From positions 1 to 64,000 of IMG/VR virus record IMGVR_UViG_3300029993_000005: a stretch of DNA of 64,000 bases; one strand, written 5' to 3'. A program made the translations under genes and the position numbers. Shown piece by piece: positions 1-56,008 of this stretch (the first letter of the stretch is position 1; the number at the start of each line of letters is the position of its first letter). The notes beneath the pieces were generated by a model. That model was not told where the DNA came from. It ran no database searches and saw only the letters and a program-made list of their open reading frames with translations.

Positions 1-353
1 TCTTTTAAGGCCTCCAGCTGCCGTTCGTGACGGGCAACTGCTAGCTTCCATTGGACGGGTTCCAAATCCTTCCCTATGGGGATTGCCTCCAATAAGTCAG
101 TACCAAATTGAGGAGCCTCTATAGCTGGCAAGCCTTCAAAAATAGAGTCAGCCAAATGTGCTAGCCATTGAGGCCTGATTTGTTTGGCAAAAGATTCATG
201 ATTGTATTCGTTCATTGTACAGCCGATAAAACAGCCACGTCCCCCTGAAAAACCCGTACCTTGGAGTACTTCATCAGCGACACGGTGTTGATCAAAACGC
301 GCTTGAAACATTTCTTTTACTTTGGGATCGTTTTGATAAGAAAGAATGGTCAT
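1..353 (-). CDS. Family-P paralogue 1 (truncated by window edge), hypothetical
   Basis: Manual translation MTILSYQNDPKVKEMF...GCFIGC...WLAHLADSIFEGLP...AIPIGKDLEPVQWKLAVARHERQLEALK; ATG at 353 behind an AAAGGAA RBS and a promoter cassette; not in the ORF track. Confidence 0.85.
   Translation of the reverse strand, partial: MTILSYQNDPKVKEMFQARFDQHRVADEVLQGTGFSGGRGCFIGCTMNEYNHESFAKQIRPQWLAHLADSIFEGLPAIEAPQFGTDLLEAIPIGKDLEPVQWKLAVARHERQLEALK
3..90. repeat. 88-bp dispersed direct repeat, copy 1 (copy 2 at 55613-55700)
   Basis: Direct comparison gives 4 mismatches in 88 bp, all synonymous on the coding strand. Confidence 0.95.
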
Positions 354-390
354 GATCTTGTTCCTTTAGTTGGGTTGTTGGTTCACGCTT

Positions 391-446
391 CAGTGCAGTG
401 ATTCCAGTATAATACAGATTGAAGCTGGTGCCAACAATTATTTTAA
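391..446 (-). promoter_or_regulatory. Class-A promoter cassette (TTGGCA-17-TATACT) with GCTGGTGCCAAC box
   Basis: -35 at 429-434, -10 at 406-411, conserved leader GGAATCACTGCACTGAAG. Confidence 0.8.
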
Positions 447-895
447 ATTACGCCAGCGTCCATTAGAGGTGGACGAGTCGCGAACACTCTGTGATTAAGA
501 TTAGGGTTCATCAGGCTCAACGTCACTTTTAACACTGGTCGCTGATCAGGGTACATTTCATCAATAAACAGAATGTGAGAAATGTGCATATTCGGAATGT
601 GATGCTTCAAGTCCAGCACGTTCATAAACAAAACTTTACGAGCGGTTAAGCGTTGTTCCTTCAGTGAATTCACAGTGAATCGCCACAAATTGTGCATAGC
701 CCTTGGTGCAACCACAATTATAGGTGACGACCGGTCAACCGGTACTTGACTCTCTAACGCGTCCAAGACAGCTAGGAAACGAGCCTCACGTTCGGGCGGT
801 GAACCCAGTTCGTGACCAGCGAATCGCGTGGTATTGTTAGCTAGTTTCTCGATTTCCTGGTCCGTGAGCTTTCGTGGATCTTTGTTTGAGTTCAT
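443..895 (-). CDS. hypothetical protein
   Basis: 150-aa ORF, start coupled to the stop of the upstream gene; stop lies in the cassette TTTAAAATAATT. Confidence 0.75.
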   Translation of the reverse strand: MNSNKDPRKLTDQEIEKLANNTTRFAGHELGSPPEREARFLAVLDALESQVPVDRSSPIIVVAPRAMHNLWRFTVNSLKEQRLTARKVLFMNVLDLKHHIPNMHISHILFIDEMYPDQRPVLKVTLSLMNPNLNHRVFATRPPLMDAGVI

Positions 896-1125
896 GCAGG
901 TTCCTCGTTTCCTTTGTGCTTGTGTTGTTGATTGCTTGCTCGTGTTCGGTGTTTGAGTTTAAGCCAAATCCTGAACATAGGATAACACAAGATCACTATT
1001 AAAGAGGCTTGACCCAAGCCATACATAAAGGCTAGAACTAAACTGAGCTTCGGGTACATTGGAGCACCGCAGATGCTGGCCGTCAAGAATAGAACAGACA
1101 GACAGTAAATTAGTTTGGACTTCAT
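892..1125 (-). CDS. small membrane protein
   Basis: Two hydrophobic stretches followed by a basic tail. Confidence 0.7.
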   Translation of the reverse strand: MKSKLIYCLSVLFLTASICGAPMYPKLSLVLAFMYGLGQASLIVILCYPMFRIWLKLKHRTRASNQQHKHKGNEEPA

Positions 1126-1128
1126 GGG

Positions 1129-1215
1129 TTATACCTCAATTGTAGTCAAGCAGTAAGCGTGGTATACATCGCGTTTTTTGCGCCCGGTCCCGAGGTAATA
1201 AGTTTGATGAATCAT
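1129..1215 (-). CDS. 28-aa peptide MIHQTYYLGTGRKKRDVYHAYCLTTIEV
   Basis: Manual translation; ATG directly behind the cassette RBS AAAGGGA and the promoter at 1250-1278. Confidence 0.55.
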   Translation of the reverse strand: MIHQTYYLGTGRKKRDVYHAYCLTTIEV

Positions 1216-1249
1216 GATTTTCCCTTTCGTTAGGACTTTCAATGAATTC

Positions 1250-1279
1250 AGTATAGTAAAGATTGAAGCTGGTGCCAAC
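1250..1279 (-). promoter_or_regulatory. Class-A promoter (TTGGCA-17-TATACT)
   Basis: -35 at 1273-1278, -10 at 1250-1255. Confidence 0.8.
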
Positions 1280-1372: not shown

Positions 1373-1378
1373 GTTCGA

Positions 1379-1682: not shown

Positions 1683-3074
1683 TTACTTCAGATTGCTATT
1701 TGCCCGGACTTGCGCAAAGGTCTGGTCGTTGTACGATACACCATTCTCGTACACAACACGCAGAAGATTCTGACTCTCAGGACGCGAGCCTTTCGGGACA
1801 GCAATCATTTTGCCTGTAGCGTCATATACAACCATCTGACGACCCTTCAGCGACGCTTTCTCAGGTGCAGTAATCGGACTCTTGTTGATACCCGTCCAAT
1901 GTTCACCATCAGCGGAAATCGCTGAAGCCTTCTGCGCCCAACCTAAGTCATCCCGCATAACTTCTTGCAACAGCGCACCACCCATACCGTACCCGTTATT
2001 CTCGATTGAGAGCTTGTTAAGCTCCAAAGCGTGACAGATACCGTTAATGGATGTACGGTTTACGCCGTCACCCTGGATAATGCGTGCTGCAGGGTTCACC
2101 ACATCGTAACCCTTCTTATTGGTGTGGAAACCGTAAGAGTTAGCGATAGACTTAACCGCGTAAACAACTTCTGCGATAGGCTTACCTGAGTCAAGACGGA
2201 TGACGGCGGTACCACCTTTCGCCAAGACCTTATCCTTCAACTGCTTGCCCCAGATGTTATCTACTGAGTTACGTTGATCGTAAGCATCGCAAACACACGC
2301 GTACTTCTTGCCTTCGCCACCATACACATCAATCATGCGTTCGTAAGCTTGGGCTTCCCTTTCACGACCCCATGCGGTCACGGTGAAATGTTCCATGGCA
2401 GGAATTGAATACCCCGCCATCCATTCATCGTAGAACTCGGTTGCGGCCTCTAAGGCTGGGACAGTATCAGTGCCCATAAAGTTGATCAAATGCGACATAC
2501 CACCAAGCGCAGCTGATTCTTCAGAACTGGCACCGCGACCCCCAAAGTCATGCAAGCGAAATGCAAGCTCTTCCTCGGGATTATCGCACGTTTGCTCTAA
2601 CCACTTACGCAAGTCCTGTTTGATATGCCAGCTCAGTGTAGCGACCGAAGACTGATACCATGCAGCACGCAGAATCTCGGTCTCAAGAAACGAACCAAGA
2701 GTCGGCAATAACGGGTCCGTGCTTACTACCTGATAACACGGGACACCGACCGGAACAATCAACCCCTCGGGAAGAGCTTCAATGCGAACCGGAGGCAGTC
2801 CGTTATGGACCTCAACGATACGCTTGAACTCTTCGTATGGAAAGATGCCGCAGTGCTCGACAATACGACGGTTTGCGTACTCCACACTTTCCATTGTCAG
2901 CGGATTCTTCATCAGCTTCCGCTTCCAACTTTGGAGACCAAACCACAGTACCTGCTTGTACATGTTCAGACTACGAGCTGAACCATAGTTACTGGCGTAT
3001 TTCAAATCGTCGGGCAGCTGCGGTCCATGCGAATACTTGTAGCTGTCCGACCCTAAAGCAAATCCGTAAGTCAT
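1683..3074 (-). CDS. nadV: nicotinamide phosphoribosyltransferase (NAMPT)
   Basis: DSYKYSH, LHDFGGRG, GTDT, SIPAMEH, IRLDSG, IIQGDG and GMGGALLQ motifs. Confidence 0.95.
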   Translation of the reverse strand: MTYGFALGSDSYKYSHGPQLPDDLKYASNYGSARSLNMYKQVLWFGLQSWKRKLMKNPLTMESVEYANRRIVEHCGIFPYEEFKRIVEVHNGLPPVRIEALPEGLIVPVGVPCYQVVSTDPLLPTLGSFLETEILRAAWYQSSVATLSWHIKQDLRKWLEQTCDNPEEELAFRLHDFGGRGASSEESAALGGMSHLINFMGTDTVPALEAATEFYDEWMAGYSIPAMEHFTVTAWGREREAQAYERMIDVYGGEGKKYACVCDAYDQRNSVDNIWGKQLKDKVLAKGGTAVIRLDSGKPIAEVVYAVKSIANSYGFHTNKKGYDVVNPAARIIQGDGVNRTSINGICHALELNKLSIENNGYGMGGALLQEVMRDDLGWAQKASAISADGEHWTGINKSPITAPEKASLKGRQMVVYDATGKMIAVPKGSRPESQNLLRVVYENGVSYNDQTFAQVRANSNLK

Positions 3075-3075
3075 G

Positions 3076-3126
3076 GCAAATCTCCTTTGCAGTTTTTAAA
3101 GACCCAGGCTCTCTGCCTAGGGTTTG
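3076..3126 (-). promoter_or_regulatory. Twin-hairpin 5' leader of nadV
   Basis: Hairpin with AGAGA loop at 3103-3122, then GCAAA-GGAGA-TTTGC around the SD at 3076-3090; same design upstream of nadM. Confidence 0.6.
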
Positions 3127-3156
3127 GTCTAGTATAAACGACCGAACACGGAATTA

Positions 3157-4275
3157 TTAATCACACGGAATCAAGTTAATCATCTTATGGATGATCCAGA
3201 AGTGATCCGAGTATAGCTCATGCGCTTGAAGTAGCCCGAGCGGTACCCACTTGACCTCTTCGAAATCATCGTTTGCCTCTACGAGAGGTAAAGAAGTATT
3301 GTCGTTCAGTAGATACAGATACGCATGCGTGATGATGCGTCCCCGGTCATCTGACCGATTCGGATCAGAGAACACGTGCTTGAACCTGAATGACAGGTCC
3401 AACATTGAACGCGGTAACTTAATGCGTGTTTCCTCGTGAGATTCACGCAATGAACTGTCAGCTAACACTTCGTCATCGTGTGCAAATCCACCTGGTAGCG
3501 CCCACAGTCCTTTACCAGGATTCAATTTGCGTTTACCCAGCAGTACGTGTGATGACTGAATGAACACTGAATCAGTAGTCGTCATTATAGGACGATAGGG
3601 TTTGTTGCCCGCATACTGGTGCTCAATTTTGTACTGAGCAGCAAAGTCACGCTGATCGCGCAAACCATCTATAAACTCAACGTTACGTGGAATCCAAGTA
3701 TCAAGATACTCCGCCACGGGTTCAGGTACGTGCTGCCGTGAATAGTTCCACGTACCGGCCAGAATGGAATCGCGTAGATCCGTTGCATTTAGAGTCACAC
3801 CTAAGCCGGGCATACCCAACTGTTGTACCTTGTAACCATGCACGTTGACTGAACCCCACTGCGGGAATTTCTTCAGATAGTACGAGGTATGGTCCTTAGA
3901 GAAACCAATCAGTCCTATAGTCCTAGGTATAGGCCAATCATCATCTGCAAGTTTGTTCTGAACGTAAGCAACCTTCTTATGGACATCCATACACCAGTGG
4001 AAATCGTGGTCATGCATGTGATCGTCTAAGAACTGAACGATGATGCGACTGTCTCTGATTTCCTGCTTGTACGTGCGCCATAGCATCTCTTCGACTTCAA
4101 CTGCCGTCCAGGGATTCTTTCGGGTACGAGGGCGGTTGGCTGAACCCGTCAAGACCAGTACATGACGCGCTTTCTTTAATGCTTCATCAATAACATGCTT
4201 GTGGCCATTATGTAAGGGGCGAAATCGACCAATGAACACAAGCATATCGAATTCATACTCATAGATGTTTGACAT
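3157..4275 (-). CDS. nadM: bifunctional NMN adenylyltransferase / Nudix (ADP-ribose) hydrolase
   Basis: GRFRPLHNGH nucleotidyltransferase motif, NATDLR, Nudix box ALPGGFAHDDEVLADSSLRESHEET; start moved to ATG 4275 behind GGAG. Confidence 0.93.
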   Translation of the reverse strand: MSNIYEYEFDMLVFIGRFRPLHNGHKHVIDEALKKARHVLVLTGSANRPRTRKNPWTAVEVEEMLWRTYKQEIRDSRIIVQFLDDHMHDHDFHWCMDVHKKVAYVQNKLADDDWPIPRTIGLIGFSKDHTSYYLKKFPQWGSVNVHGYKVQQLGMPGLGVTLNATDLRDSILAGTWNYSRQHVPEPVAEYLDTWIPRNVEFIDGLRDQRDFAAQYKIEHQYAGNKPYRPIMTTTDSVFIQSSHVLLGKRKLNPGKGLWALPGGFAHDDEVLADSSLRESHEETRIKLPRSMLDLSFRFKHVFSDPNRSDDRGRIITHAYLYLLNDNTSLPLVEANDDFEEVKWVPLGLLQAHELYSDHFWIIHKMINLIPCD

Positions 4276-4276
4276 T

Positions 4277-4325
4277 TGCAAATCTCCTTTGCAGTTAATA
4301 AAAGAACACTCTCTGTGTTCAGTTT
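4277..4325 (-). promoter_or_regulatory. Twin-hairpin 5' leader of nadM
   Basis: GAACAC-AGAGA-GTGTTC at 4304-4320; TGCAAA-GGAGA-TTTGCA at 4277-4293. Confidence 0.6.
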
Positions 4326-4352
4326 GATTCAATTTGTATTTACTCCGCCGTT

Positions 4353-4670
4353 TTAATGACGAAAATCCTTAGGGTGTTGTCTCGTACTCCGACAGGAATG
4401 TGCGCACACGATGTAACCACAATTGTTTGTCTGACATTGAACGAACGTTTTTAGTTGGATGACGGTCATAATCACTGTGATATGCAGGCTTGAATAAATT
4501 AACTGCTTGAGTTGTCCCAGTTTTTCCTTAGGCACCAACTTCAGTAATTCAGCCGTGCGAGCTTTCTCGCTTTCAAGCTCGATGTTGGCCTGCATCCACA
4601 AATTCTTGAAATGCTCGGCCAGCGCGGCTTGGGAACGAACTCCGTTGCATAGGTCATCCGCGATTGACAT
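4353..4670 (-). CDS. hypothetical, paralogue of 22839-23030
   Basis: Shared AEHFKNLWMQA; start moved to ATG 4670 behind GAGG. Confidence 0.75.
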   Translation of the reverse strand: MSIADDLCNGVRSQAALAEHFKNLWMQANIELESEKARTAELLKLVPKEKLGQLKQLIYSSLHITVIMTVIQLKTFVQCQTNNCGYIVCAHSCRSTRQHPKDFRH

Positions 4671-5029: not shown

Positions 5030-5031
5030 GA

Positions 5032-10860: not shown

Positions 10861-10892
10861 TTTATTCTTCCTTTTCGTTGGACTGTTTGCTT

Positions 10893-10936
10893 CAGTGCAG
10901 TGATTCCAGTATAGCACAATTTAAGATGGTGCCAAC
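10893..10936 (-). promoter_or_regulatory. Class-A promoter cassette (TTGGCA-16-TGnTATACT)
   Basis: -35 at 10930-10935, -10 at 10908-10913, extended -10, conserved leader. Confidence 0.75.
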
Positions 10937-10942
10937 ATCTAA

Positions 10943-12250: not shown

Positions 12251-12305
12251 GATCTTTTCCTTTTTCGTTAGGACTTTGAATCGGTTATTACTTAACCATG
12301 AACCC

Positions 12306-12335
12306 AGTATAGACTAATTTGGTGCTGGTGCCAAC
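12306..12335 (-). promoter_or_regulatory. Class-A promoter (TTGGCA-17-TATACT)
   Basis: -35 at 12329-12334, -10 at 12306-12311. Confidence 0.75.
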
Positions 12336-12358
12336 ATTTATTTTAAATAGTTTATAGT

Positions 12359-12670: not shown

Positions 12671-12708
12671 TTTGTTCTTCCTTTTCGTTGGGTTGTTTGA
12701 TTCAGTGG

Positions 12709-12755
12709 AGTGATTCCAGTATAGTTTAGGTTGGTGCCAACGTCAACAATTATTT
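12709..12755 (-). promoter_or_regulatory. Class-B promoter cassette (TTGACG-17-TATACT, palindrome in the spacer), copy 1
   Basis: 47 bp identical to 54281-54327 and 57516-57562. Confidence 0.85.
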
Positions 12756-12764
12756 AGAGTTTAA

Positions 12765-20087: not shown

Positions 20088-20117
20088 AGTATATACTAAA
20101 TTAGGGTTGGTGCCAAC
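20088..20117 (-). promoter_or_regulatory. Class-A promoter (TTGGCA-17-TATACT), perfect GTTGG-TG-CCAAC
   Basis: -35 at 20111-20116, -10 at 20088-20093. Confidence 0.8.
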
Positions 20118-20322
20118 AATTATTTGCTGATATAGCATCAACTAAAGTACAGCGGATTTTTGGTGACAGCTACTCGGATGTTACGCATAGCCGCAGCCGA
20201 TCCCCAAATCTGATTAAACTTTGCATTGAAATCTTCAATCGTTTTGACACGTACCACCTGAATAACTTTACTGCCTTTGATCAAGAACTATTTTCACAGG
20301 ATAATCCTGATAGCCGATAATT

Positions 20323-34333: not shown

Positions 34334-35557
34334 TCAGCCCTTAACGCAGAGTACTTGTTTCAGCGTAGCCTTGATTTCTACCAATTCCGATTGTGCCTCC
34401 ATAACATCATCAATATTTTTATAAGCACCTGGAATTTCGTCCAACACGCTACTATCTTTTTTGCATTCAACACCGGCTGTTTGTGTAGCAATATCGGCTA
34501 ACGAAAAACTACGTTTTGCTTGCCCGCGAGACATGACGCGACCGGCCCCATGACTGCAAGAACAATAAGCTGCTTCATGTCCCTTACCACAGACAATGAA
34601 AGAACGGGCACCCATGGATCCAGGAATGATACCCAGTTGACCTTTGTACGCACCTACAGCACCTTTGCGGGTGATCCATAGAGGGCGTCCACCAAATTCC
34701 TCTTTAGACAGAAAGTTATGATGGCAGTTTACGGCTTCGTTCACCAAAGTGAAAGGTTTAATTGTGCGCTCAACAGCGGACAAAACAAGCATCAGCATGA
34801 GGTCACGATTCAGCTTCGCGTATTCTTGGCTCCACAGCATGGCTTCAACGTACTCATCAAATAGCTCGGTGCCCTCAGCGAACCAGGAAAGATCCTTGTC
34901 TGGCAAATTGACGTGCTGCCTGTACAGCTCTTCTTTTGCCAAGTTGGTCGCGGCCTCACCCACGGTCTTGCCAACATTACGACTACCCGAATGCAACATC
35001 ACCCACACATTTTGGTTTTCATCCACGCACAACTCGATGAAATGATTGCCACCACCCAAAGTACCTAACTGCATGTTCATACGAGCTTCGTCAAAACGTT
35101 TGATACGTTTCATGATACGAATTGAGGGAAATCTAGATAACAGTTCCGCACGACGACGGCTGAGTTCCATGCCGACTAAACCTTGATGACGCAGGTGAAT
35201 ATCCCGTTGATGGTAGCTAAAACCTACAGGTACATCGCGTTCGATTTGATGACGGACACCAACCAAACTATCAGGAAGGTCAGAGGCCTTAAGTGACGTC
35301 TGTACAGCACACATGCCGCATCCGATGTCGACTCCAACAGCTGCGGGTATAACTGCCCCAGTCAGAGGTATAACGGAACCAACAGTTGCACCCATACCAA
35401 AGTGTACATCAGGCATCACCGCAACGTGTCCACCAAGAATAGGCAGGTTTGACACGTTGCGTAATTGATCAAGGGCCGTCTGTTCCACGGGCATATTGCC
35501 CGTCCACAGTTTGATTTTACCGCCAAACATTTGCTCATAAACTTCGTTCTGTTGCAT
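34334..35557 (-). CDS. rtcB: RtcB 3'-phosphate/5'-OH RNA ligase
   Basis: MPDVH.G.G, VGVDIGCGM, GTLGGGNHFIE, HSGSR, HHN, RKGA, PGSMG, SHGAGR, DEIPGAYK. Confidence 0.97.
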   Translation of the reverse strand: MQQNEVYEQMFGGKIKLWTGNMPVEQTALDQLRNVSNLPILGGHVAVMPDVHFGMGATVGSVIPLTGAVIPAAVGVDIGCGMCAVQTSLKASDLPDSLVGVRHQIERDVPVGFSYHQRDIHLRHQGLVGMELSRRRAELLSRFPSIRIMKRIKRFDEARMNMQLGTLGGGNHFIELCVDENQNVWVMLHSGSRNVGKTVGEAATNLAKEELYRQHVNLPDKDLSWFAEGTELFDEYVEAMLWSQEYAKLNRDLMLMLVLSAVERTIKPFTLVNEAVNCHHNFLSKEEFGGRPLWITRKGAVGAYKGQLGIIPGSMGARSFIVCGKGHEAAYCSCSHGAGRVMSRGQAKRSFSLADIATQTAGVECKKDSSVLDEIPGAYKNIDDVMEAQSELVEIKATLKQVLCVKG

Positions 35558-46949: not shown

Positions 46950-47288
46950 CTAGGCTAGCACACCACGGGCTGGCGGCTTCAACAATCGTGCTTGATCCGA
47001 CGAAGCTTCGATGAATGCTTTTATTTCTGAGGGCTGGCGAACAACGGGCAGGCACTCAGGCAGATTGTCCGCGATCCACATATCGGCTTCGCCCTTAGTC
47101 TTGAAACTGTCGATAGCCGGACGCTTTTGAATTTCTACACCGAATTCATCCTGCACTGAAATGCTACGTGTTTTTGAGCGCAGGGCAGTCCATTCTTTGT
47201 GCCCTGGATTCTTGATGAGAACCACCCAGTGCGGACTATGATATTCGATACAGACTTCAAGTTTCGGACTTTTCTGTGCACGCCACAT
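46950..47288 (-). CDS. hypothetical protein
   Basis: 112-aa ORF, AAAGGA RBS. Confidence 0.7.
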   Translation of the reverse strand: MWRAQKSPKLEVCIEYHSPHWVVLIKNPGHKEWTALRSKTRSISVQDEFGVEIQKRPAIDSFKTKGEADMWIADNLPECLPVVRQPSEIKAFIEASSDQARLLKPPARGVLA

Positions 47289-47301
47289 AAACTGTATCCT
47301 T

Positions 47302-47310
47302 TATTTACTA
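47302..47310 (-). promoter_or_regulatory. TAGTAAATA motif
   Basis: Intergenic, upstream of 47288. Confidence 0.55.
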
Positions 47311-47362
47311 GGCTAAAAATGGTGATTGGGTGAAAGCTGTAATTAGTGTTGTTTTTGTCTAT

Positions 47363-47845
47363 TTACCGGGCTTGAATTTCTGCTCCTGCCTGGTCCAATA
47401 ATTGAAACAACCCGTCACGACACTTTAAAGCTCTTCCTTGCGAGTCAGTGGTACTCTTACGATCAACTGATCTATAATAATCAAATAATAAATCAAGATC
47501 AGCACCAACAGGGATCCTTTCGCGTAATTGCACATGGAAGATCTCACGTTCGCCTGCGGGCAGAGCTTCGAACATGGTGTCGTTTAACTCCACAAACCAA
47601 ATAGGCCATCCAGCGCTCTCAGCCACGATTTCATGTAAAAAATCTATATTAGTGTGAAAATTGGGTTTGAGCTCATATGCCATGCATCCAACGCTACAAC
47701 CCTTGAACTTTTGTCCCTTGATTGCAGGGAGAATACCGTAGGTGCCGGACATAAGCATATCCAGCTCGTAGTGCTTCTTGGCTAGATTGACGTGCAGTTC
47801 TTTGACTTTGGGATCGTTGTGATAAGACAGAATCTTGTTGGACAT
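47363..47845 (-). CDS. Family-P paralogue 2
   Basis: ILSYHNDPKVK, HYELD.L.SGTYG, GCSVGC, GWP.W, IPVGADL. Confidence 0.85.
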   Translation of the reverse strand: MSNKILSYHNDPKVKELHVNLAKKHYELDMLMSGTYGILPAIKGQKFKGCSVGCMAYELKPNFHTNIDFLHEIVAESAGWPIWFVELNDTMFEALPAGEREIFHVQLRERIPVGADLDLLFDYYRSVDRKSTTDSQGRALKCRDGLFQLLDQAGAEIQAR

Positions 47846-47888
47846 TTCGGTTTCCTTTTCGTTGGGTTTTTGTTTGGTAACTGCTAAT

Positions 47889-47897
47889 TATTTACTA
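47889..47897 (-). promoter_or_regulatory. TAGTAAATA motif
   Basis: Intergenic, upstream of 47845. Confidence 0.55.
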
Positions 47898-47978
47898 TAC
47901 ACTACTATTTCTCGCAGGCAGCAAAAATGTGTCAAGAACAGTTTTGTTGGGCAGTATAGACCTTTTAAACGTTTGAAT

Positions 47979-48656
47979 TTAGGTTGGTGCCGGAATAGGT
48001 GCTTTAGCCAGCAGGTAAGTAAGCATCAAGGATTCGAACACATAGTAATCAACTTCGGGTTGTCCACGAAATACTTGGGCTGCGCTAACTGTAGCACGGG
48101 ATGAACGTGTTAAGGATTGTACTGCAGACTGAGCCGCTGATTGATAGGACCAAGCCTCAGGATTTGTTTGAGACAACGCTAGTCTAGCATGGGCCGCCGC
48201 TTGTTCACAGGCGTCAATAGCCTCCACTAATTTCGAATATACAGGGTTACCAGTTAGCACCGAATTGCAGTAATCCTTGCACAGTTCAATAGCGGCACGG
48301 GTCTCCTTAGCGTAGTCCTCATCATTGTTGGTCAGGGCCGTCAACGTTTTGTTGGCCCTAACGATTGCCAATTGCCATTCAACTACAGACAGATCGGCAC
48401 CAACGGGAATTGCTTTCAGAGTTTGTACCAAATAGGCCCCTGAGTTGTCAGCCGGTTGTCCATCCAAAATAGCTGACACCAACCGAGCTAGCCACGATGG
48501 GATTCCCAGTTTATTTACTTTTTGCTCGGTAAAGGCTCCACCATACATATTTTGCTGTTGAATTAAACCTATTACTTCACGCACGTAATCAATGTCTGTT
48601 GTCAGTTGAGCAAGGCACTGGGCCTTGACTAAAGGATCACTATTGAAGGCTGGCAT
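47979..48656 (-). CDS. Family-P paralogue 3 (GCxxGC motif absent)
   Basis: AFNSDP..KA, LGIPSWLARL, AIPVGADLS.V.WQLA, NDEDYA. Confidence 0.85.
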   Translation of the reverse strand: MPAFNSDPLVKAQCLAQLTTDIDYVREVIGLIQQQNMYGGAFTEQKVNKLGIPSWLARLVSAILDGQPADNSGAYLVQTLKAIPVGADLSVVEWQLAIVRANKTLTALTNNDEDYAKETRAAIELCKDYCNSVLTGNPVYSKLVEAIDACEQAAAHARLALSQTNPEAWSYQSAAQSAVQSLTRSSRATVSAAQVFRGQPEVDYYVFESLMLTYLLAKAPIPAPT

Positions 48657-48733
48657 TTTGTTTTCCTATTTTCGGTTAGGTTTTGATGTAATAATTTTGT
48701 TAAGACTAGCACAGCACAAAAGATTCAACTAGA

Positions 48734-48979
48734 CTATTGTTGTTGCTTAATTTCATCGCGTTGAAAAATCAAATTACTAATCTGGTCTTGCATATCATCT
48801 GCTTGCTGTTGAAGCTCGTCAACTTGTTCTTGAAGAGCCTCATGTTCTGATTGTAGGTCAATCAGATCATTAGTTTTAGACCCATACTTGTTATCCATAT
48901 AGGTGTGGAAAGCATCGGCTAGCATCATGGCGCAGAAAAACAAAAAGGCGCAAATTATAAGTACGTTGAGACTGTTCAT
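48734..48979 (-). CDS. single-TM plus coiled-coil small protein
   Basis: Hydrophobic N-terminus, heptad-rich C-terminus. Confidence 0.7.
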   Translation of the reverse strand: MNSLNVLIICAFLFFCAMMLADAFHTYMDNKYGSKTNDLIDLQSEHEALQEQVDELQQQADDMQDQISNLIFQRDEIKQQQ

Positions 48980-49125
48980 TTGGACTCGTCCTTAGGAAAT
49001 TTTGTGGACAGCATCTCTTCTAGTTTAATACAATCCTCTAGGTTAGATGTCAGCATCCAATGGTTAAATAGTTTTCTCAGTCTGCCCCGTGTTGTTTTAT
49101 TTGCTTCTGAGTTCGGGGGCCTCAT
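48976..49125 (-). CDS. 49-aa peptide MRPPNSEANKTTRGRLRKLFNHW...
   Basis: Manual translation; stop overlaps the next ATG (ATGA). Confidence 0.5.
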   Translation of the reverse strand: MRPPNSEANKTTRGRLRKLFNHWMLTSNLEDCIKLEEMLSTKFPKDESK

Positions 49126-49152
49126 TCTCAGGGTATTGTTTCGACGCAGCCC

Positions 49153-49746
49153 TTATTTATCGTGGGCAATAGCGATGGCTTCAATCTCAGAAATGGCTTC
49201 ACGTAGAGCCTGCACATATGAATAACAGGCAACGCGGTCAAACGAGAAGTACGAAGACGAACGAATTTCTGGGGAAGTCTGCCGCTTACTTACGTTCAGA
49301 CAAGCGTGTGGGTTACCAAGCTGGGTTACTACGTTTATAGACAATGTGTATTCTTCCAGCTTATGGACGATCCAATCGATCAAGCCTGCCTCAACCTTGA
49401 CAACAGGTTGACCGAACGGCCGTTCAGTGTTCGCCATCCGGGTCACAGGAAATCCCTGTTCAATGTTTATACCACGAGAATTGAGGGCCATCGTCAAGTA
49501 AGCTGAAAATTCAATAACCGACATTTTGGCGACTGCACGCTTGCCGATCAGGGTATTGGCGTATCGGGTGTAAAGGACGGCACATAATTCCTTGACCTCT
49601 TTTATGGTCAGATGACTGCCGATCAATTCGTTAGTACCAATACGGTTTGTATCTGCAGATACCTCGCCTTTACGATTGTTGACGATGACGCGCATGTTGT
49701 TCAACACATTAAACTGGATCAATTCAAATTTCTGTTCGAAATTCAT
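49153..49746 (-). CDS. hypothetical protein
   Basis: 197-aa ORF. Confidence 0.75.
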   Translation of the reverse strand: MNFEQKFELIQFNVLNNMRVIVNNRKGEVSADTNRIGTNELIGSHLTIKEVKELCAVLYTRYANTLIGKRAVAKMSVIEFSAYLTMALNSRGINIEQGFPVTRMANTERPFGQPVVKVEAGLIDWIVHKLEEYTLSINVVTQLGNPHACLNVSKRQTSPEIRSSSYFSFDRVACYSYVQALREAISEIEAIAIAHDK

Positions 49747-49832
49747 TTGCTTTCTCTTCTTGGTTGTAAGAGGGTTAGACCGGCTTGGCCCTAGCGGTGT
49801 TGTCTGTGAACTCTATTTCAAATGTCCATTAG

Positions 49833-50708
49833 TTACGAAATGTTGAAGCCAGCCAGTGTCTTGGCACGCACACGTTCACCGAGATCGCGATTTTCAAAAC
49901 GTTGTGCACGGATGCTGGGTGGTGCACCAAAAAATCCCTGTGCTACGTTGAAGCCATCGGCTACACCCGCTTTGACAGCCGCTAGGATGTCATCCTTAGT
50001 CCAGGAAAAATTCTGTGTACTGGGGTTGCGAACCTCGCGAACTCGATCAAGCATGAAATCAAACTTGATTTCCTCCTCTAAGGAATAGAAGGTAACGGGT
50101 AGGTGGCGGTAATGATTGTATATGACACCACGTTTCACTAGATGCATATCGATGTCACGGTGCATTTGGCTGAAGGCCCGACCCTCAGGAGTATAAGCAC
50201 CAACGTCATAGCAATAGCCACGATCATCGCGTTCCATATAATACTGGATAGACTGGATAACCCAAGTGTAGGTTAAACGTTCCTTAGCAGTCTGCTGTTG
50301 AACCCAAACTTCGTCACCTTCCCAAAATTTGGTATCAGGTAATGGTCCGACGTAAGAACGGTTCACGAGTTTATTTTGCAAATCGTTGTAATTGTCCTCC
50401 TTAAGAAGACTGGCATATTCTTCTTGGTAGCGACGGTCGTCTTCTTGTTTGTCTATCAGACAGATAGAGTAACCATCACTGTTTTCAGTGACGCCGTTGT
50501 CCCAAGACACCACGGCTACCCCGTCTTGTTCATACACGCCTTGTTCGCGACACAGATAACCAATGCGTTCTCGATATGACAGAATACGCGTCTTGGATAG
50601 TATGGTGCCCTCTGTGCCATCGGCTACGCCCCGGCGACCCCAGACACGAGCCTCGTTATCCATTTGCATTACGACGCGATCACCGACACGAAGTTGTGAA
50701 CTTAACAT
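49833..50708 (-). CDS. hypothetical with SH3-like segments
   Basis: LRVGDRV...GTEGTI; FWEGDEV. Confidence 0.75.
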   Translation of the reverse strand: MLSSQLRVGDRVVMQMDNEARVWGRRGVADGTEGTILSKTRILSYRERIGYLCREQGVYEQDGVAVVSWDNGVTENSDGYSICLIDKQEDDRRYQEEYASLLKEDNYNDLQNKLVNRSYVGPLPDTKFWEGDEVWVQQQTAKERLTYTWVIQSIQYYMERDDRGYCYDVGAYTPEGRAFSQMHRDIDMHLVKRGVIYNHYRHLPVTFYSLEEEIKFDFMLDRVREVRNPSTQNFSWTKDDILAAVKAGVADGFNVAQGFFGAPPSIRAQRFENRDLGERVRAKTLAGFNIS

Positions 50709-50723
50709 TTGATTAACTCCAAA

Positions 50724-51617
50724 TTAGGAAATGAGGCGCATGAGGCGCTTCAAGTCGAGTAAGGCTTTCAGGGTTGCGGCGGTGAAAGACTCGGTATCCT
50801 CAGATGCGTATATACAGCGCTTGCTGGCGCGACCTTTGGCGAAGGTCTGCACATACATACACATACCGTACTCGAGACCTACCAAGTCGCGCTTGATCGA
50901 GATCTGAGGATTGAGCTCAGCTACTAGCCGCATAATTTCTGACAGGTTCGCAGCGGTCCCCGTAGGTTCAGGCTTTTCGAAATCCTCGATTGCGAGGTGC
51001 AACGCACGTACATAATCAGCTGTGACCGAAGGTTCATACAGAACCCAAAGCTTGGGTTCGCTGCCGAAGGTGTGGACGCCTAGGTAATGTCCATCGTCTT
51101 CCTTTATGGATACAGCCAATCCGTTGTGCGCCAGTCTATGGATCAAGCTGGTTTGATCGAGGTGCTCGTCGGTCGGGTCAACGGCTTTGTCGTTCGTAGG
51201 TTCGTCTTCGGAAGACTTGCCCAACGACTCGCGCGTGGCTTTCTGATTTGCGACGGCCAAACGTACCGAACGTTCAACTTTGCTAAGTCCCTCCTCACCG
51301 TGGATGGCGAGAATCTCGTAGAAGACCAGAAGCAATTGCTGTACGAATTCCTCGCCGGTCTTGGACCGGTAGCCTTTAAATGTAGTGAACGGGACCCGCA
51401 GGGCGGAAGTCAGGAACCGAATAAAGAACGAATGGTCTTCTATGCAACGAACAAATCCTTTGAGCTCAAACTGCAAATCACATTCGGTGTACACTATGAA
51501 TTCGGTATGAGTACGCTTAGCTTGTCTTAAGCTTAAGCAGTTTAGGGCAGTCAAAACCAGGCTACAAACCAGGCTACGGATGAGGTTGGTGTCTTCTGTT
51601 AAGTTGCGTGAGGTCAT
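50724..51617 (-). CDS. hypothetical protein
   Basis: 297-aa ORF. Confidence 0.7.
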   Translation of the reverse strand: MTSRNLTEDTNLIRSLVCSLVLTALNCLSLRQAKRTHTEFIVYTECDLQFELKGFVRCIEDHSFFIRFLTSALRVPFTTFKGYRSKTGEEFVQQLLLVFYEILAIHGEEGLSKVERSVRLAVANQKATRESLGKSSEDEPTNDKAVDPTDEHLDQTSLIHRLAHNGLAVSIKEDDGHYLGVHTFGSEPKLWVLYEPSVTADYVRALHLAIEDFEKPEPTGTAANLSEIMRLVAELNPQISIKRDLVGLEYGMCMYVQTFAKGRASKRCIYASEDTESFTAATLKALLDLKRLMRLIS

Positions 51618-51647
51618 GTTATGAAGTCCTGTCTTTGATTGTTGTGG

Positions 51648-51959
51648 TTACGCGGGAGCGCCGTTTACCATCCAACGGGCACAGAGGATACGGTCGTCAT
51701 GTAGCAACGATATACGAGCATTGACCGGAAAGACAAATTCAGGGCGGTTGCGAACCAAGGCCCCATACAGGGGGATCGAAGGCTGCGCCAATGCAGCGGC
51801 CATACTTTCGGACACAACCGGTTTGGAGTCGGCAGAAGCCAGTGTTAGGTACACACATTTTTGTGTGGATTCGACCACGCGTCGAGCCTTTTGTTGGTCG
51901 ATCGCACAGAAGCTACAGACATTAACATATGCGTGTTGGTGCGTTGAGCAGAACGGCAT
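51648..51959 (-). CDS. hypothetical with N-terminal C..H....C..C motif
   Basis: Start moved to ATG 51959 behind CCCAACGAAAAGGAAG. Confidence 0.7.
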   Translation of the reverse strand: MPFCSTHQHAYVNVCSFCAIDQQKARRVVESTQKCVYLTLASADSKPVVSESMAAALAQPSIPLYGALVRNRPEFVFPVNARISLLHDDRILCARWMVNGAPA

Positions 51960-51993
51960 GGTCTCTTCCTTTTCGTTGGGGTGCGGTTCATGA

Positions 51994-52395
51994 CTATGAA
52001 TAATAGTTCTCAGTGCGTGATAGGTAATCCACGAATTTTTCGGGGCCAGCGGCACGTGCTTTCACAAAAGCTGGATAGTCCTGTAGATGCTGCAATACAT
52101 GAAGAAGATCTTGAATAGTACTGCCGTAGCTATCGGAGATAATATAAGTATGATCGTCATATTTGCCCAAACCCAGTTCCCAACGTTCATCTTTGGTGGC
52201 GGTGTATAACAATTCGCCTCGAAACATCGGTTCTGAGTAGTCCACATTATCGTCCAGCTTGTCTGTGAGGGTTAGAGTTAGGCGGGACTCTGCGTGTTCG
52301 ATAGTTATTTTGTTTGCATTGTCCTTACGCTCAATAGTTAGACCCCATGCTTTTGCGAACTCTCTGAATACTATTGACGGTTTGTTGATTTTCAT
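51994..52395 (-). CDS. hypothetical protein
   Basis: First gene after the promoter at 52430. Confidence 0.75.
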   Translation of the reverse strand: MKINKPSIVFREFAKAWGLTIERKDNANKITIEHAESRLTLTLTDKLDDNVDYSEPMFRGELLYTATKDERWELGLGKYDDHTYIISDSYGSTIQDLLHVLQHLQDYPAFVKARAAGPEKFVDYLSRTENYYS

Positions 52396-52429
52396 TTTGA
52401 TTTCCTTTTCGTTAGGACCTAGTCACTAC

Positions 52430-52459
52430 ACTATAATTTATATTGCAGCTGGTGCCAAC
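52430..52459 (-). promoter_or_regulatory. Class-A promoter (TTGGCA-17-TATAGT)
   Basis: -35 at 52453-52458, -10 at 52430-52435. Confidence 0.75.
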
Positions 52460-52559
52460 CTTTATTTTACAAATCCAATGACATCAGCCAGTAACTGAGC
52501 CAAAAAATGAAGGGCATCTAACTTAGACAGCTCGGTATGAGTTGGGCTTAAACTCACGT

Positions 52560-52886
52560 TCACGCTTGTGCGTAACGCACTTTAACTTCAATCCACTCTT
52601 CAGTTTTGACCGGCGGTTGTTCTTGAATGTCCTCGAAATGGGCACGTACTAAATCTTCGTCTAGGATTTGGTTCGAACGGTCCTTGAATTCGAGTTCCAT
52701 CAAATAACCTTCATCACCATTGAACTGGAAATTCTGACCTTTAGCCTTATCGTACACGAACTGTTCCAAGCTCTCGATTTCGGTCTTGATATCTTTAAGC
52801 TGGGCTACTAAGGCCGCTCTCTTGACGCGTAGACTATATAATTCGTTGGCACGTTCACGTATCGTTTTGTTGTTAATGAACTTCAT
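52560..52886 (-). CDS. coiled-coil protein (Gam/Gp157-like layout)
   Basis: N-terminal heptads followed by a short beta-rich domain. Confidence 0.6.
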   Translation of the reverse strand: MKFINNKTIRERANELYSLRVKRAALVAQLKDIKTEIESLEQFVYDKAKGQNFQFNGDEGYLMELEFKDRSNQILDEDLVRAHFEDIQEQPPVKTEEWIEVKVRYAQA

Positions 52887-52888
52887 AA

Positions 52889-53137
52889 TCAGTCCTTACA
52901 ATGGAGCGGGGCAAAGAACAAGTTAAGTAGATCGGACATTTGCATGTTGAAACCAGCGTAGGCCTCGTTTTCAACATAGTCAACTTTATGTTTGAGTAAG
53001 CACAAACGGAAGCACGAGGCATTATTTCTCTCAAAGCTCCAGAACCTGGACAAAAATTTTATAGCTACGTTATTGTCTGCAAAGCCATCATAGGAATCCC
53101 ATACAATTTCTACTGCTGGGTTCCCTCTCAAAAGCAT
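52889..53137 (-). CDS. hypothetical protein
   Basis: 82-aa ORF. Confidence 0.6.
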   Translation of the reverse strand: MLLRGNPAVEIVWDSYDGFADNNVAIKFLSRFWSFERNNASCFRLCLLKHKVDYVENEAYAGFNMQMSDLLNLFFAPLHCKD

Positions 53138-53287
53138 ACCCGGAAGTTTTAGAATCTCTTTTTCCAGGATAAGTATAACTATAGCTTTTTAGTTTGAGAA
53201 TTCAGTGCTAATAGCTCATTGTATAAATCGAGATTGGTTTTCACAATTTCTCCTTTTCGTTAGGTAGTTTAGTTGGTGCCTAGGAAT

Positions 53288-53470
53288 TTATGTTACCAGT
53301 TCCCACTTGAGTTCTGAACCGGGCAGGAAATCCTCTTCAAATACAAGTTGCTCAAAAATTGAGCCATCAAAACGTATGACTAAAGCCTCTGCTTGACCCC
53401 TGAACTCGGGCACCTGACGTTCGGTAATAACGAATGACTCCAAACTAGAAAACACAACAACGTAGAACAT
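53288..53470 (-). CDS. hypothetical protein
   Basis: 60-aa ORF, AGGAG RBS. Confidence 0.65.
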   Translation of the reverse strand: MFYVVVFSSLESFVITERQVPEFRGQAEALVIRFDGSIFEQLVFEEDFLPGSELKWELVT

Positions 53471-53509
53471 GGTAACTCCTAATTAGGATCGTATAAATTC
53501 AAATAGACA

Positions 53510-54247
53510 TTAAATTTCTACAGGCATGGGCACAGGCACGGACGCAGCAGATAGCAAGTTTAGAAGTGTGTCGCGCTCCCAGAGCCAATGAGCTTCAGCT
53601 GAATCTGCTGCTGAGTATGCTGAATCTATTGCTGAGTATGCTGAATCTGATAATGACCAGTAGGCTGACCGTGCTGCTGACTCTGCTGACCAGGATGCTG
53701 ACTCTGCTGACCAGGATGCTGACCAGTAGGCTGACCGTGCTGACTCTGCTGCTGACTCTGCTGCTGACTTTGCTGCTTCTTTAGCCCTCAGTCTTTGTTC
53801 AGGATTAGCTAAATTTGCAATTTCGGCCTCAAAATAAGCCACGCATTGTTCAATTGCGCTAACACAAACGATGGCATACTCGGCGGGGTTCAAACGCAAA
53901 GGGACAAGTGTATGTTCTGCCCTAGCCTTTGCTAACTGCCATTTAACTTTAGAAACGTCGGCGCCTACGGGTATTACAGTCAAAAAGTCTACCGCAAATT
54001 GTTGAGCATCAATGGGAGAAAGATTCTCAAAAATAGTGTCCTCAAGTCGCGCCAGCCACACGGGTAGACCAAGTTCGATTGGATACTGATCGTGATCGTA
54101 GCTCTCCAAGGTACAGCCAACAGCGCATCCATGTTTAGCTTCAGGGTCCCAGCCTACACGCTGCATGATATTGTCTGCTTCATGATGAGCTTTAAGACGC
54201 GCTACGTATTTAGCTTTAATTGCAGGGTCGCCGTGAAATGCTTTCAT
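53510..54247 (-). CDS. Family-P paralogue 4 with Ser/Ala/Trp repeat tail
   Basis: AFHGDPAIKA, GCAVGC, LGLPVWLARL, IPVGADVS, SAYWSASWSAESASWSAE, HWLWERDTLL; start moved to ATG 54247. Confidence 0.9.
   Translation of the reverse strand: MKAFHGDPAIKAKYVARLKAHHEADNIMQRVGWDPEAKHGCAVGCTLESYDHDQYPIELGLPVWLARLEDTIFENLSPIDAQQFAVDFLTVIPVGADVSKVKWQLAKARAEHTLVPLRLNPAEYAIVCVSAIEQCVAYFEAEIANLANPEQRLRAKEAAKSAAESAAESARSAYWSASWSAESASWSAESAARSAYWSLSDSAYSAIDSAYSAADSAEAHWLWERDTLLNLLSAASVPVPMPVEI
53680..53741. repeat. 62-bp exact repeat (copy 2 at 55384-55445)
   Basis: Encodes the SAYWSASWSAESASWSAE block in paralogues 4 and 5. Confidence 0.9.
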
Positions 54248-54277
54248 GATCTTGTTCCTTTTCGTTGGGTTGTTTGA

Positions 54278-54333
54278 TTCAGTGATTCCAGTATAGTTTA
54301 GGTTGGTGCCAACGTCAACAATTATTTTAAATA
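54278..54333 (-). promoter_or_regulatory. Class-B promoter cassette, copy 2
   Basis: 56 bp identical to 57513-57568; TTGACG 54313-54318, TATACT 54290-54295. Confidence 0.9.
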
Positions 54334-54893
54334 GTCTCGTCAATCTGAGATTCGGCATCAAGCAACAAGCGTGTGAGAACCTGGGTCTTGTTCAATTTCC
54401 AAGTCTTGGCTAGGGCCTCCAAAATTTTTGAGGTTTCGGGACTAAGTGTACTACCGGGCAGGCGCTTGCCTCCAGCTTCTTTCAGTGATGTATAAGCATT
54501 GGTCTTACGAACTCGCTGTTTTGGTTCGGTCTTGGGTTCAATCACGGAGTCATCACTGGTCAGGAGTCTCGCCAAATAGGCGGTCTTTGCATATTGATAC
54601 TCATAGGCGGTCTTTGCATATTGATACTCGGTGAACATAAGTTCAGAGACTTCTTGAGCATACTCAGCAGTACGCAGACTTGCTGAGAAAGTACTCCAAT
54701 TAGGGGCCTCCGGGTAAACCGAGCTATACAGAGAAGTGCTTTTGTCAGCCACAGCTGCTTCAACCAAGCTGAGCATGTCGGCCTGAACTAAATCTGCCTT
54801 GAGTGTTATTTTGTCAAAGAAATCATGACCATCAGCATACGTCGCGGTCAAAATTTCCACCAGTGAGGCAGCGCTATAATATTGTGTGTTCAT
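54327..54893 (-). CDS. protein with C-terminal RHH-like domain; contains a 27-bp tandem duplication
   Basis: SLKEAGGKRLPGSTLSPETSKILEAL resembles the neighbouring gene; EYQYAKTAY x2. Confidence 0.75.
   Translation of the reverse strand: MNTQYYSAASLVEILTATYADGHDFFDKITLKADLVQADMLSLVEAAVADKSTSLYSSVYPEAPNWSTFSASLRTAEYAQEVSELMFTEYQYAKTAYEYQYAKTAYLARLLTSDDSVIEPKTEPKQRVRKTNAYTSLKEAGGKRLPGSTLSPETSKILEALAKTWKLNKTQVLTRLLLDAESQIDETI
54576..54629. repeat. perfect in-frame 27-bp tandem duplication
   Basis: ataggcggtctttgcatattgatactc x2. Confidence 0.95.
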
Positions 54894-54937
54894 TATCTTT
54901 CCTTAATTACGATTTATTTTGTTTTATTACCTACGTT

Positions 54938-55192
54938 TTACTTCGAGCTGGCACCAATACGCTTAGCCTGACGAATCAACGATTCTTCGATAGCCGAACG
55001 CTTGGTCCCATAGTGTTCGGTCAATGTAGCTAAGGCTGCGCTAGCCTCAGCGTTGATGCGGACGGTTCCTAGTCGCTGTCCACCATCTGCAAACAGTGAA
55101 TTCTCCATGGCTTGTACGCGCTCGTTAGCCGTCATGGCTGTGCCTGTGAAAGGACGACCGCGCTTGACTACTATGTTTTTAATTTTTTTCAT
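54938..55192 (-). CDS. AT-hook plus RHH-like small DNA-binding protein
   Basis: KRGRPFTG.AMTANER; SLFADGGQRLGTVRINAEASAAL. Confidence 0.7.
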   Translation of the reverse strand: MKKIKNIVVKRGRPFTGTAMTANERVQAMENSLFADGGQRLGTVRINAEASAALATLTEHYGTKRSAIEESLIRQAKRIGASSK

Positions 55193-55241
55193 TTTGCATG
55201 CTCCAGTTGTTTATTGATCGTTGGTGCCGTGCCTTGCCCTA

Positions 55242-55269
55242 ATTATAGCACAGAGGATTTAGGCTTCAA
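55242..55269 (-). promoter_or_regulatory. sigma70-like promoter TTGAAG-16-TGnTATAAT; half-box GTTGGTGCC in the leader (55220-55228)
   Basis: -10 at 55242-55247 with TG extension. Confidence 0.55.
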
Positions 55270-56008
55270 TCAACAGCTTCAGTAAGGTATCGCGCTCCCA
55301 GAGCCAATGAGATTCAGCTGAATTGGCTGACAGTGCTAACTCTGCTGATGACCATACTGCTGACCAGTAGGCTGAAAGTGCTAACTCTGCTGACCAGGAT
55401 GCTGACTCTGCTGACCAGGATGCTGACCAGTAGGCTGACCGTGCTAAATCTGCTAAACGTGCTGACTCTGCTGAATCCGCTGCTGAATCTGCTGCTTTTT
55501 CAGCTTCTTTACGCTGGTCCTCCGTAGCTGTTCCCTCAACCTTAGCTTTGCAATAGTTGATTACCAGATGGAGGGCTTGGTAGCATTTAACAGCGTAGTC
55601 CTCTTTGTTATATTTTAATGCTTCCAGCTGCCGTTCGTGACGAGCAACTGCTAGCTTCCATTGGACGGGTTCCAAATCCTTCCCTATGGGGATTGCTTCC
55701 CTCAAATCTACATGGAATTTAGCTCTAAGGTCTGCGGGCAATCCCTCAAACATTGACTCACTCAAGTATGCTAGCCACAAGGGCCATCCGGCATGATCAG
55801 CTACTGTCTTGTGCTTGTCCTCACTATCTGGGTCAATATCGTGCGCCATACAACCAATACTACAGGCTACAAATACTTCGTGGTCGTCACGCTTCTCTAA
55901 GTTACCGTATGTACCGGAACGAAGAATATCAAGTTCGTAATGTCTACGGGCCTGAGCTACATGGTAGTCTTTTACTGCTTGATCGTTGTGATAAGAAAGT
56001 ACGGTCAT
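55259..56008 (-). CDS. Family-P paralogue 5 with Ser/Ala/Trp repeat tail
   Basis: N-terminus like paralogue 2, middle nearly identical in DNA to paralogue 1, tail identical in part to paralogue 4. Confidence 0.9.
   Translation of the reverse strand: MTVLSYHNDQAVKDYHVAQARRHYELDILRSGTYGNLEKRDDHEVFVACSIGCMAHDIDPDSEDKHKTVADHAGWPLWLAYLSESMFEGLPADLRAKFHVDLREAIPIGKDLEPVQWKLAVARHERQLEALKYNKEDYAVKCYQALHLVINYCKAKVEGTATEDQRKEAEKAADSAADSAESARLADLARSAYWSASWSAESASWSAELALSAYWSAVWSSAELALSANSAESHWLWERDTLLKLLIEA

Follow-up and report, generated by a model that had tools for sequence, protein, structure and literature searches.

A mosaic gene in a six-member paralogue family of a large phage from peat metagenomes

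Exchange of gene segments in phages is known from the tail-fibre segments of T-even phages and from the mosaic modules of lambdoid phages. In bacteria, recombination likewise reshuffles parts between the several small helical paralogues found in polyimmunity loci of polymorphic toxin systems (PMC3482391). Here we describe a gene family with features of both in a 64,000-nucleotide stretch of DNA, called the window below, which corresponds to the initial 64 kb of one contig of 230,110 bp (C1, the IMG/VR virus record IMGVR_UViG_3300029993_000005, ~97% complete). Five members, P1 (1..353), P2 (47363..47845), P3 (47979..48656), P4 (53510..54247) and P5 (55259..56008), lie on the minus strand of the window. 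The preliminary description of this DNA had counted these five; the five open reading frames (ORFs) do align as one family and are true paralogues, but the count is six. A hidden Markov model (HMM) of the five copies, run over the six frames of the circularised genome, recovered exactly one further member, P6, outside the window (C1:72360-73166, plus strand), and the next best ORF had E=0.49. By profile comparison, the phage thus carries six paralogues of a very large, mainly phage-borne protein family. The central result is that P5 is a statistically supported mosaic, and it is strongly supported that 3' segments of P1, P4 and P5 have been exchanged by homologous recombination in the form of gene conversion.

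The family shares with the T-even and lambdoid cases short identical crossover blocks, low synonymous divergence (dS) in the exchanged segments and conflicting segment trees. It differs from them in being, by all appearances, non-structural, in that the exchange is intragenomic and spans 55 kb, and in that one exchanged tract has been caught as a natural polymorphism. Polyimmunity loci resemble it in having several small helical paralogues per genome, some in tandem (here P3-P2, and P0013-P0019 in an unrelated phage), and in the reshuffling of parts between copies. Unlike polyimmunity genes, however, those described here are spread across 72 kb in the genome of a jumbo phage of virulent type, three of them (P1, P4 and P5) with putative promoters of their own; exchange affects their conserved rear half and not a variable tip, and there are no toxins. 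The best explanation overall, which we regard as rather probable, is that the six paralogues are accessory binding proteins that would be produced early from dedicated promoters and whose 3' halves undergo gene conversion. The recombination itself is a familiar phage process; this is a well-documented new example of it, which will not surprise phage biologists.

Mosaic structure of P5

We aligned the six copies by codon and followed their sliding identity to P5 by column. The nearest relative of P5 changes along the gene. It is P2 and P6 over alignment columns 0-300 (identity 0.42-0.69), P1 over columns 330-540 (0.73-0.90), P4 over columns 570-690 (0.88-1.00) and P1 again from column 690 to the end (0.90-1.00). 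On the minus strand of the window, the first segment (55701..56008) encodes an N-terminal domain (N-domain) of the P2/P6 type with nucleotide identity of 0.42-0.69 and saturated dS. The P1-like middle (55505..55700; nucleotide identity 0.73-0.90) includes an 88-bp block in which positions 3-90 of the window match 55613-55700 with 4 mismatches, all of them synonymous, just as had been described before. It is followed by 62 nt identical to P4 (55384..55445, matching the 53688-53749 region), which lie inside a heptad repeat, and by 117 nt identical to the 3' end of P1 (55266..55382). A further exact block of 22 nt is common to P4 and P5 within 55278-55329. The longest exact matches are 117 nt for P1/P5 and 62 nt for P4/P5, and only 9-22 nt for the other thirteen pairs, which puts the two long blocks far beyond chance.

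Synonymous sites tell the same story. The dS between P5 and P1 decreases along the gene, from 1.41 (N-domain) through 0.61 (middle) to 0.07 (tail); for P5 and P4 it amounts to 0.04 in the repeat, with saturation in all other parts. In a random-walk test on informative sites similar to 3SEQ, with 20,000 permutations, P5 was identified as a child of (P1,P2), (P1,P6) and (P1,P4) with p<=5e-5, the parent-specific sites being clustered beyond chance. Segment trees built with 36 outgroup homologues disagree with one another. The N-domain tree places P1 beside P0031/P0040 (100/95), outside a clade of P5, P2 and P6 (91/84), whereas the one for residues 105-168 joins P1 to P5 as its sister (99/87) and unites five of the six paralogues (89/92). 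Hence, no single congruent tree describes all segments. The crossover boundaries fall in the conserved stretch that codes for IP.G.DL and in the repeat DNA with its 21-nt periodicity.

A more careful comparison shows which parts of the patchwork proposed in the preliminary description are recent. Sliding identity, the permutation test, dS and the segment trees all bear out the patchwork as such. Its N-terminal likeness to P2 is present as well, but because dS there is saturated, it reflects an old kinship within a subfamily and not a recent exchange. The tail had been assigned to P4. The 62-nt and 22-nt P4 blocks are real, yet the tail is closest to P1 with its 117 identical nucleotides, a match that could not be seen before because the end of P1 is encoded at the other end of the contig.

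The contrast between the two halves of P5 could also be explained by uneven constraint without any recombination, the rear half being strongly conserved and the front half free to vary. The rear half does end in a conserved capping helix, and the P1/P5 middle is under purifying selection (nonsynonymous pN of 0.10 against synonymous pS of 0.42). Constraint on a protein, however, cannot erase synonymous differences, and it is these that drop between P5 and P1 from the N-domain to the tail, down to 117 identical nucleotides. P4 has the same conserved tail, yet its dS to both P5 and P1 is ~0.5. Besides, the conflict between segment trees is well supported and the permutation tests reject a uniform mixture, which makes this alternative extremely improbable. 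The permutation tests, the incongruent trees, the collapse of dS and a converted tract that is polymorphic in nature (see below) are the grounds on which we conclude that gene conversion among the paralogues, as originally suggested, has taken place.

The paralogues had also been called diversifying, which turned out to be true of one region of the protein. In an unrelated phage (L020 1427-3003, JGI Ga0451490_007440), a young tandem pair of family members, P0013-P0019, is ~85% identical in nucleotide sequence. The ratio of nonsynonymous to synonymous change (omega) in this pair is 1.06 over codons 33-68, which encode the loops around a pair of cysteines, 0.05 over codons 1-32 and 0.29 over codons 69-135, and amino-acid changes are concentrated in the repeat and in the loops on either side of the Cys pair. 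Hence, omega is near 1 in the Cys-pair loops, only there, and in this other phage. The N-domains of the paralogues, which take up the first ~100 codons, are anciently diverged and under purifying selection overall, and the exchange among P1, P4 and P5 homogenises their 3' halves rather than diversifying them.

Natural molecules and a segregating tract in P1

All public runs that hold this phage are peat metagenomes, and all are DNA metagenomes. The mosaic could have been produced by misassembly through paralogous repeats, in which case no molecule would carry the P5 patchwork. The record is a metagenome assembly, its contig breaks inside the block shared by P1 and P5, and its ends differ at 4 bases; another contig (L007) joins P1 to genes downstream of P5, and a 30-bp difference in the P5 repeat between assemblies could be a collapse. 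Against this, 20.7 kb around P2-P5 are identical, base for base, to the window in a 139-kb contig from another sample (L001) except for that one 30-bp indel, and P1 is base-identical in 8 contigs. The boundaries of the mosaic have too little sequence in common for a de Bruijn path switch, and at the junction of the P5 N-domain with the middle the sequences are only 73-90% alike, which is beyond what an assembler would merge. Unitigs at k=31 show the branching expected of real paralogues. Misassembly is thus highly improbable as the origin of the mosaic.

A short tract in P1 gives a view of the process itself. At positions 44..60 (minus strand) the window copy of P1 has the bases of P5 at CDS (coding sequence) nt 294, 297, 309 and 310, and L007 carries the same four P5-like bases. 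The copy at the other end of the contig and 8 of the 9 other contigs have the other P1 allele. The length of the converted tract is between 17 and 53 bp, and the stretches shared by P1 and P5 on its two sides are only 11 and 25 nt. With so little shared sequence an assembler could not change from one path to the other, so the P5-like P1 allele must exist in the reads. The k=31 contigs of run X6 are interrupted precisely where the tract starts and where it stops, and a piece of 77 nt (17+30+30) spans it, whereas those of runs X1 and X2 are unbroken there; the X6 breaks are indirect support for the second allele at the level of reads. The 117-nt tail common to P1 and P5 forms a separate unitig in the peat runs, at about double depth, and branches into P5 sequence on both sides.

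The segregation of a P5-like tract in the peat population points to ongoing conversion, and through this 17-bp polymorphism gene conversion can be seen directly, which is rarely possible in an uncultured phage population. There is also a hint at P5 as the donor in the exchange, in that the homologue P0034 groups with P5 in both segment trees and the polymorphic tract of P1 is P5-like.

L007 (JGI Ga0302305_1001368) has an unusual order at 3001-4434, where the genes upstream of P1 are followed by P1 with the P5-like tract and then by the two genes found downstream of P5 in the window. This junction may have arisen by recombination within the shared tail of 117 nt, as a 55.6-kb circle or a duplication junction, or else by an assembly join at that repeat. 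The 30-bp indel between L001 and the window sits inside the P5 repeat. The Ala/Ser/Trp repeat with its 21-nt period (window 55259-55500 and 53590-53790) varies in length between assemblies, and a P4 variant, P0018, lacks 15 bp in it.

Promoter cassettes, predicted fold and candidate function

P1, P4 and P5 are first genes directly behind copies of a ~95-bp repeated cassette, located on the minus strand at 354..450, 54248..54344 and 56010..56102, respectively. The cassette consists of an A/T-rich stretch, TTGRCR (TTGGCA before P1 and P5, TTGACG before P4), 17 nt, TATACT, a leader and a Shine-Dalgarno sequence. Its hexamers match 10 of the 12 sigma-70 consensus positions with a 17-nt spacer and lie 35-45 nt before the ATG. 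The preliminary description had correctly placed these three genes behind repeated elements, which it took for palindrome cassettes. The inverted repeat in them is short and imperfect and covers the -35 hexamer, and by their layout they are sigma-70-type promoter cassettes. No such cassette was found upstream of P2 and P3.

An nhmmer model of the three cassettes found 11 in the genome, all within C1:354-71219, and in 3 of the 11 the gene that directly follows is a family member. The other eight precede unrelated genes, at 1222-1291, 10867-10941, 12297-12351, 12677-12756, 20088-20125, 52421-52471 and 57490-57570 in the window and at C1:71131-71219 on the plus strand; P6 lies ~1.1 kb behind a plus-strand cassette. 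All cassettes up to 57.5 kb are on the minus strand and the one at 71.1 kb is on the plus strand, an orientation switch that suggests divergent early transcription units. Consensus host-type promoters clustered in one part of the genome are the usual look of early regions in large virulent phages. With sigma-70-type promoters before three copies and homologues in early-left operons of temperate phages, the early expression proposed in the preliminary description appears fairly probable, with transcription by the host RNA polymerase.

Late expression as virion proteins, for instance as internal head proteins or as fibre-associated proteins with low-complexity repeats, would fit the weak matches that some members have to a phiKZ internal head protein (E 0.16) and to tail-fibre PHROGs (E ~1e-4). 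These matches, however, lie in the Ala/Ser-rich repeat and below any cut-off. Moreover, three copies have host-type promoters, the genes sit among those of nucleotide metabolism and replication, and the family in temperate phages is found in the early-left operon, far from the structural modules. A virion role is hence very improbable.

The individual copies differ in length and completeness. P1 has its ATG at 353, and the window holds the first 353 nt of its CDS, which continues over the contig junction at C1:229584-229923. Joining the overlapping contig ends yields a P1 of 230 aa (P0007), which is uninterrupted in 9 other contigs, so that P1 is by its sequence a complete gene and not a truncated fragment. 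P2 (160 aa), in tandem with P3, has the N-domain and a short helical end without the Ala/Ser/Trp repeat. P3 (225 aa), the most divergent copy, has neither the Cys pair nor the conserved His residues nor FE.LP. P4 (245 aa) starts at the ATG at 54247, an alternative TTG at 54361 being upstream of its putative promoter, and the mosaic P5 has 249 aa. The motifs listed in the preliminary description are approximately right, with GC..GC absent from P3 as it had said, and individual copies depart from them at single residues. In P5, DP is replaced by DQ and GC..GC by AC..GC; the G of G.P.WL is missing from P1, P2 reads WF in this motif, P4 has FENLS and GADV, and P3 is without GC..GC and FE.LP.

We modelled P5 with AlphaFold2 and obtained a mean predicted local distance difference test score (pLDDT) of 84 and a predicted template modelling score of 0.82, the repeat (residues 187-228) being helical and of low confidence. 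The N-domain alone gave a very confident model (pLDDT 97). It is a compact, helical domain of ~130 residues flanked by variable loops rich in indels, and its elements follow in the order helix, beta-hairpin, C-x3-C pair at the junction of hairpin and helix, and five helices. In a full-length member the N-domain is followed by a helical linker, the heptad Ala/Ser/Trp repeat and a capping helix that ends in ..ERD.LL.LL. H23 and C53 do not vary in 145 and 108 distant members, nor does E88 among N-domains; K13, D27, C49, H66 and D84 are conserved in >=90%, and F87 is invariant or conserved in >=90%. Four candidate Cys2His2 ligands are thereby conserved (H23 and C53 invariant, C49 and H66 >=90%), and the C-x3-C pair together with conserved His, Asp and Glu residues indicates that the N-domain probably contains a metal site, for which a Cys2His2 arrangement would be the simplest interpretation.

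Searches of the model with Foldseek and VIA-align found no convincing solved structural relative. The nearest named predicted structures are Imm5_like clusters (template modelling score, TM, 0.37-0.66) and bacterial proteins of 385-417 aa with a thioredoxin domain. The combination of a very confident N-domain model with no convincing match to a solved fold makes the family attractive for structural work and for screens of anti-defence activity.

In the mechanism that we favour, P1, P4 and P5 would each be transcribed by the host RNA polymerase from their own copy of the sigma-70-type cassette early in infection. They have swapped 3' halves by gene conversion, and the first ~100 codons stay anciently diverged. 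The family would then consist of accessory proteins that bind host factors, with the loops of the N-domain setting specificity and the exchangeable rear half acting as a common scaffold. This binding role, with specificity encoded in loops on a shared scaffold, is put forward only tentatively, as somewhat short of an even chance; the omega of 1.06 over the loop codons of the tandem pair P0013-P0019 speaks for the specificity loops. Six natural variants, three of them with a common rear and different fronts, constitute a ready-made domain-swap series for mapping specificity.

A different function for the same proteins would be enzymatic or redox chemistry, with the Cys pair and the His and Glu residues as the active or redox site and with paralogues that differ in substrate. 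The invariance of H23, C53 and E88 and the near invariance of K13, D27, C49, H66 and D84 across more than a hundred distant members fit such a function. So do bacterial proteins (ESM Atlas, Pseudomonadota) that combine a thioredoxin domain with the fold of this family, in which the module aligns over 215-222 residues with a TM by query of 0.68-0.74 and the N-domain alone over 116 residues with a TM of 0.69, all in predicted models only. A search for a thioredoxin domain in 145 family members found none, and the phage proteins are stand-alone. We find an enzymatic or redox role rather unlikely.

Several observations weigh against the favoured mechanism as a whole. Many of the invariant polar residues (H, C, E, D and K) would suit an enzyme equally well, and the structure searches, by placing the module beside a thioredoxin domain in bacterial proteins, hint at redox chemistry more than at simple binding. 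The promoters are assigned by their match to a consensus. The second P1 allele is present in only two assemblies from one peat project, and the alignment is uncertain inside the low-complexity repeat.

A bolder version of this mechanism treats the three promoter-led copies as a cassette system, in which the promoter cassette at the 5' end and the homogenised repeat rear at the 3' end would serve as recombination handles around a divergent N-domain, the products being a new class of metal-stabilised phage inhibitors that act on host defence or toxin proteins. We consider this version quite unlikely. If it is true, the specificity modules would be movable between loci and between co-infecting phages, and the six copies would be the phage-side counterpart of bacterial polyimmunity loci. 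A DNA mimic of the Ocr/ArdA kind was also considered for the family and was rejected, as the paralogues are only mildly acidic (isoelectric points of 4.9-6.1, net charge of -3 to -14).

Relatives of the family and genomic setting

Imm5 and Imm5_like (PF14423, PF21805), immunity proteins of polymorphic toxin systems, are among the closest described systems, being like the present family mostly alpha-helical, small, often phage-borne and often multi-copy. In structure and language-model searches, Imm5_like clusters matched with a TM of 0.37-0.50 by query and 0.54-0.66 by row, in predicted models only, and the 'Imm-5-like' match in BFVD had E 0.46 and a probability of 0.80. The signature of Imm5 has been given as 'R, D' (Zhang et al. 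2012, PMC3482391), which the R-D pair in the last helix of the family (ERD) recalls. The likeness vanishes when the N-domain alone is used and hence concerns only the helical rear part; the Cys/His N-domain belongs to the phage family and is not part of Imm5. The Imm5 Pfam models gave no match at E<=1 in 5 paralogues or 42 members, at E<=0.01 in 145 other members or at E<=10 in the six-frame genome, and Imm5_like was not found by HMMER in 301 sampled genomes. A cognate toxin gene (DYW deaminase or CdiA-CT) is absent beside the family in the window, L013, L014, L015, L020 and L021, where its neighbours are small genes without assigned function, YqaJ, NinB, methylases and integrase. The structural lead to Imm5 is a weak one.

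The family extends far beyond this phage. A word search found 39 relatives, all annotated as 'hypothetical', in Xanthomonas siphophages and in assemblies of Lysobacter, Luteibacter and Rhodanobacter, and an exhaustive profile search found 4380 cluster representatives (50% identity) at E<=1e-3, including 1163 at E<=1e-30. In a comparison of 187 members (42 + 145) with Pfam and NCBIfam no model matched, and the only hits were sub-threshold ones to low-complexity sequence. The PHROGs matched by members are those of unknown function, a search of the PDB by sequence profile returned nothing, and there was no match to a known anti-defence, defence or immunity family at the sequence level. As host-takeover or anti-defence effectors, the role put forward in the preliminary description, the proteins are candidates only. 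The family is therefore among the larger unnamed phage families, without a Pfam, NCBIfam or PDB relative, and deserves a name. As its N-domain profile had no match in 400 other genomes of the class to which one carrier genome belongs, the family appears to be mainly viral.

Bacterial copies reside in prophages of the lambdoid kind, in an operon flanked by repressor/Cro on one side and integrase on the other, with YqaJ exonuclease, NinB, HNH and DNA methylases close by, and another copy lies just upstream of excisionase and integrase. An early-left operon placement of homologues was seen in three temperate phages or prophages. In the prophages of Lysobacter antibioticus (CP011129; L014) and of a Luteibacter metagenome-assembled genome (L015), the next gene after the family member encodes 68-72 aa and may be a small partner conserved with it. 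Both loci have large DNA methyltransferase genes within a few kb.

The ends of the contig overlap by 187 bp (C1:1-187 against C1:229924-230110, 4 mismatches). Judging from this overlap, the record, which IMG/VR classes as 'linear', represents a genome that is circular, or circularly permuted, and was cut open within P1. The long ORFs of the window, translated without any alternative genetic code, are all on the minus strand, and the genes include topoisomerase II subunits, an NAD-dependent ligase, NAMPT, a cytidylyltransferase/NUDIX protein and RtcB. This gene set identifies the source, at the level of gene content, as a large ('jumbo') phage. A megablast of window positions 47000-56500 against 50,697 phage records gave no match, i.e. 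none of them is close at the DNA level, and a search for related loci with P0007 as query returned the same phage only and no diverged relative.

Several neighbouring genes may be mentioned in addition. Pairs of NAD salvage genes of the NAMPT and NMNAT-like kind have been reported to counter NAD-depleting defences. NAMPT (window 1683-3074) adjoins the cytidylyltransferase/NUDIX gene (3157-4332), which is NMNAT-like, just upstream of P1. The RtcB ligase gene is located at 34334-35557, and a Thg1-like gene with a Pfam match at 59615-60466. Between P5 and P4, a gene of 188 aa contains a perfect 27-nt tandem duplication (window 54576-54629), which is a repeat of 9 codons.

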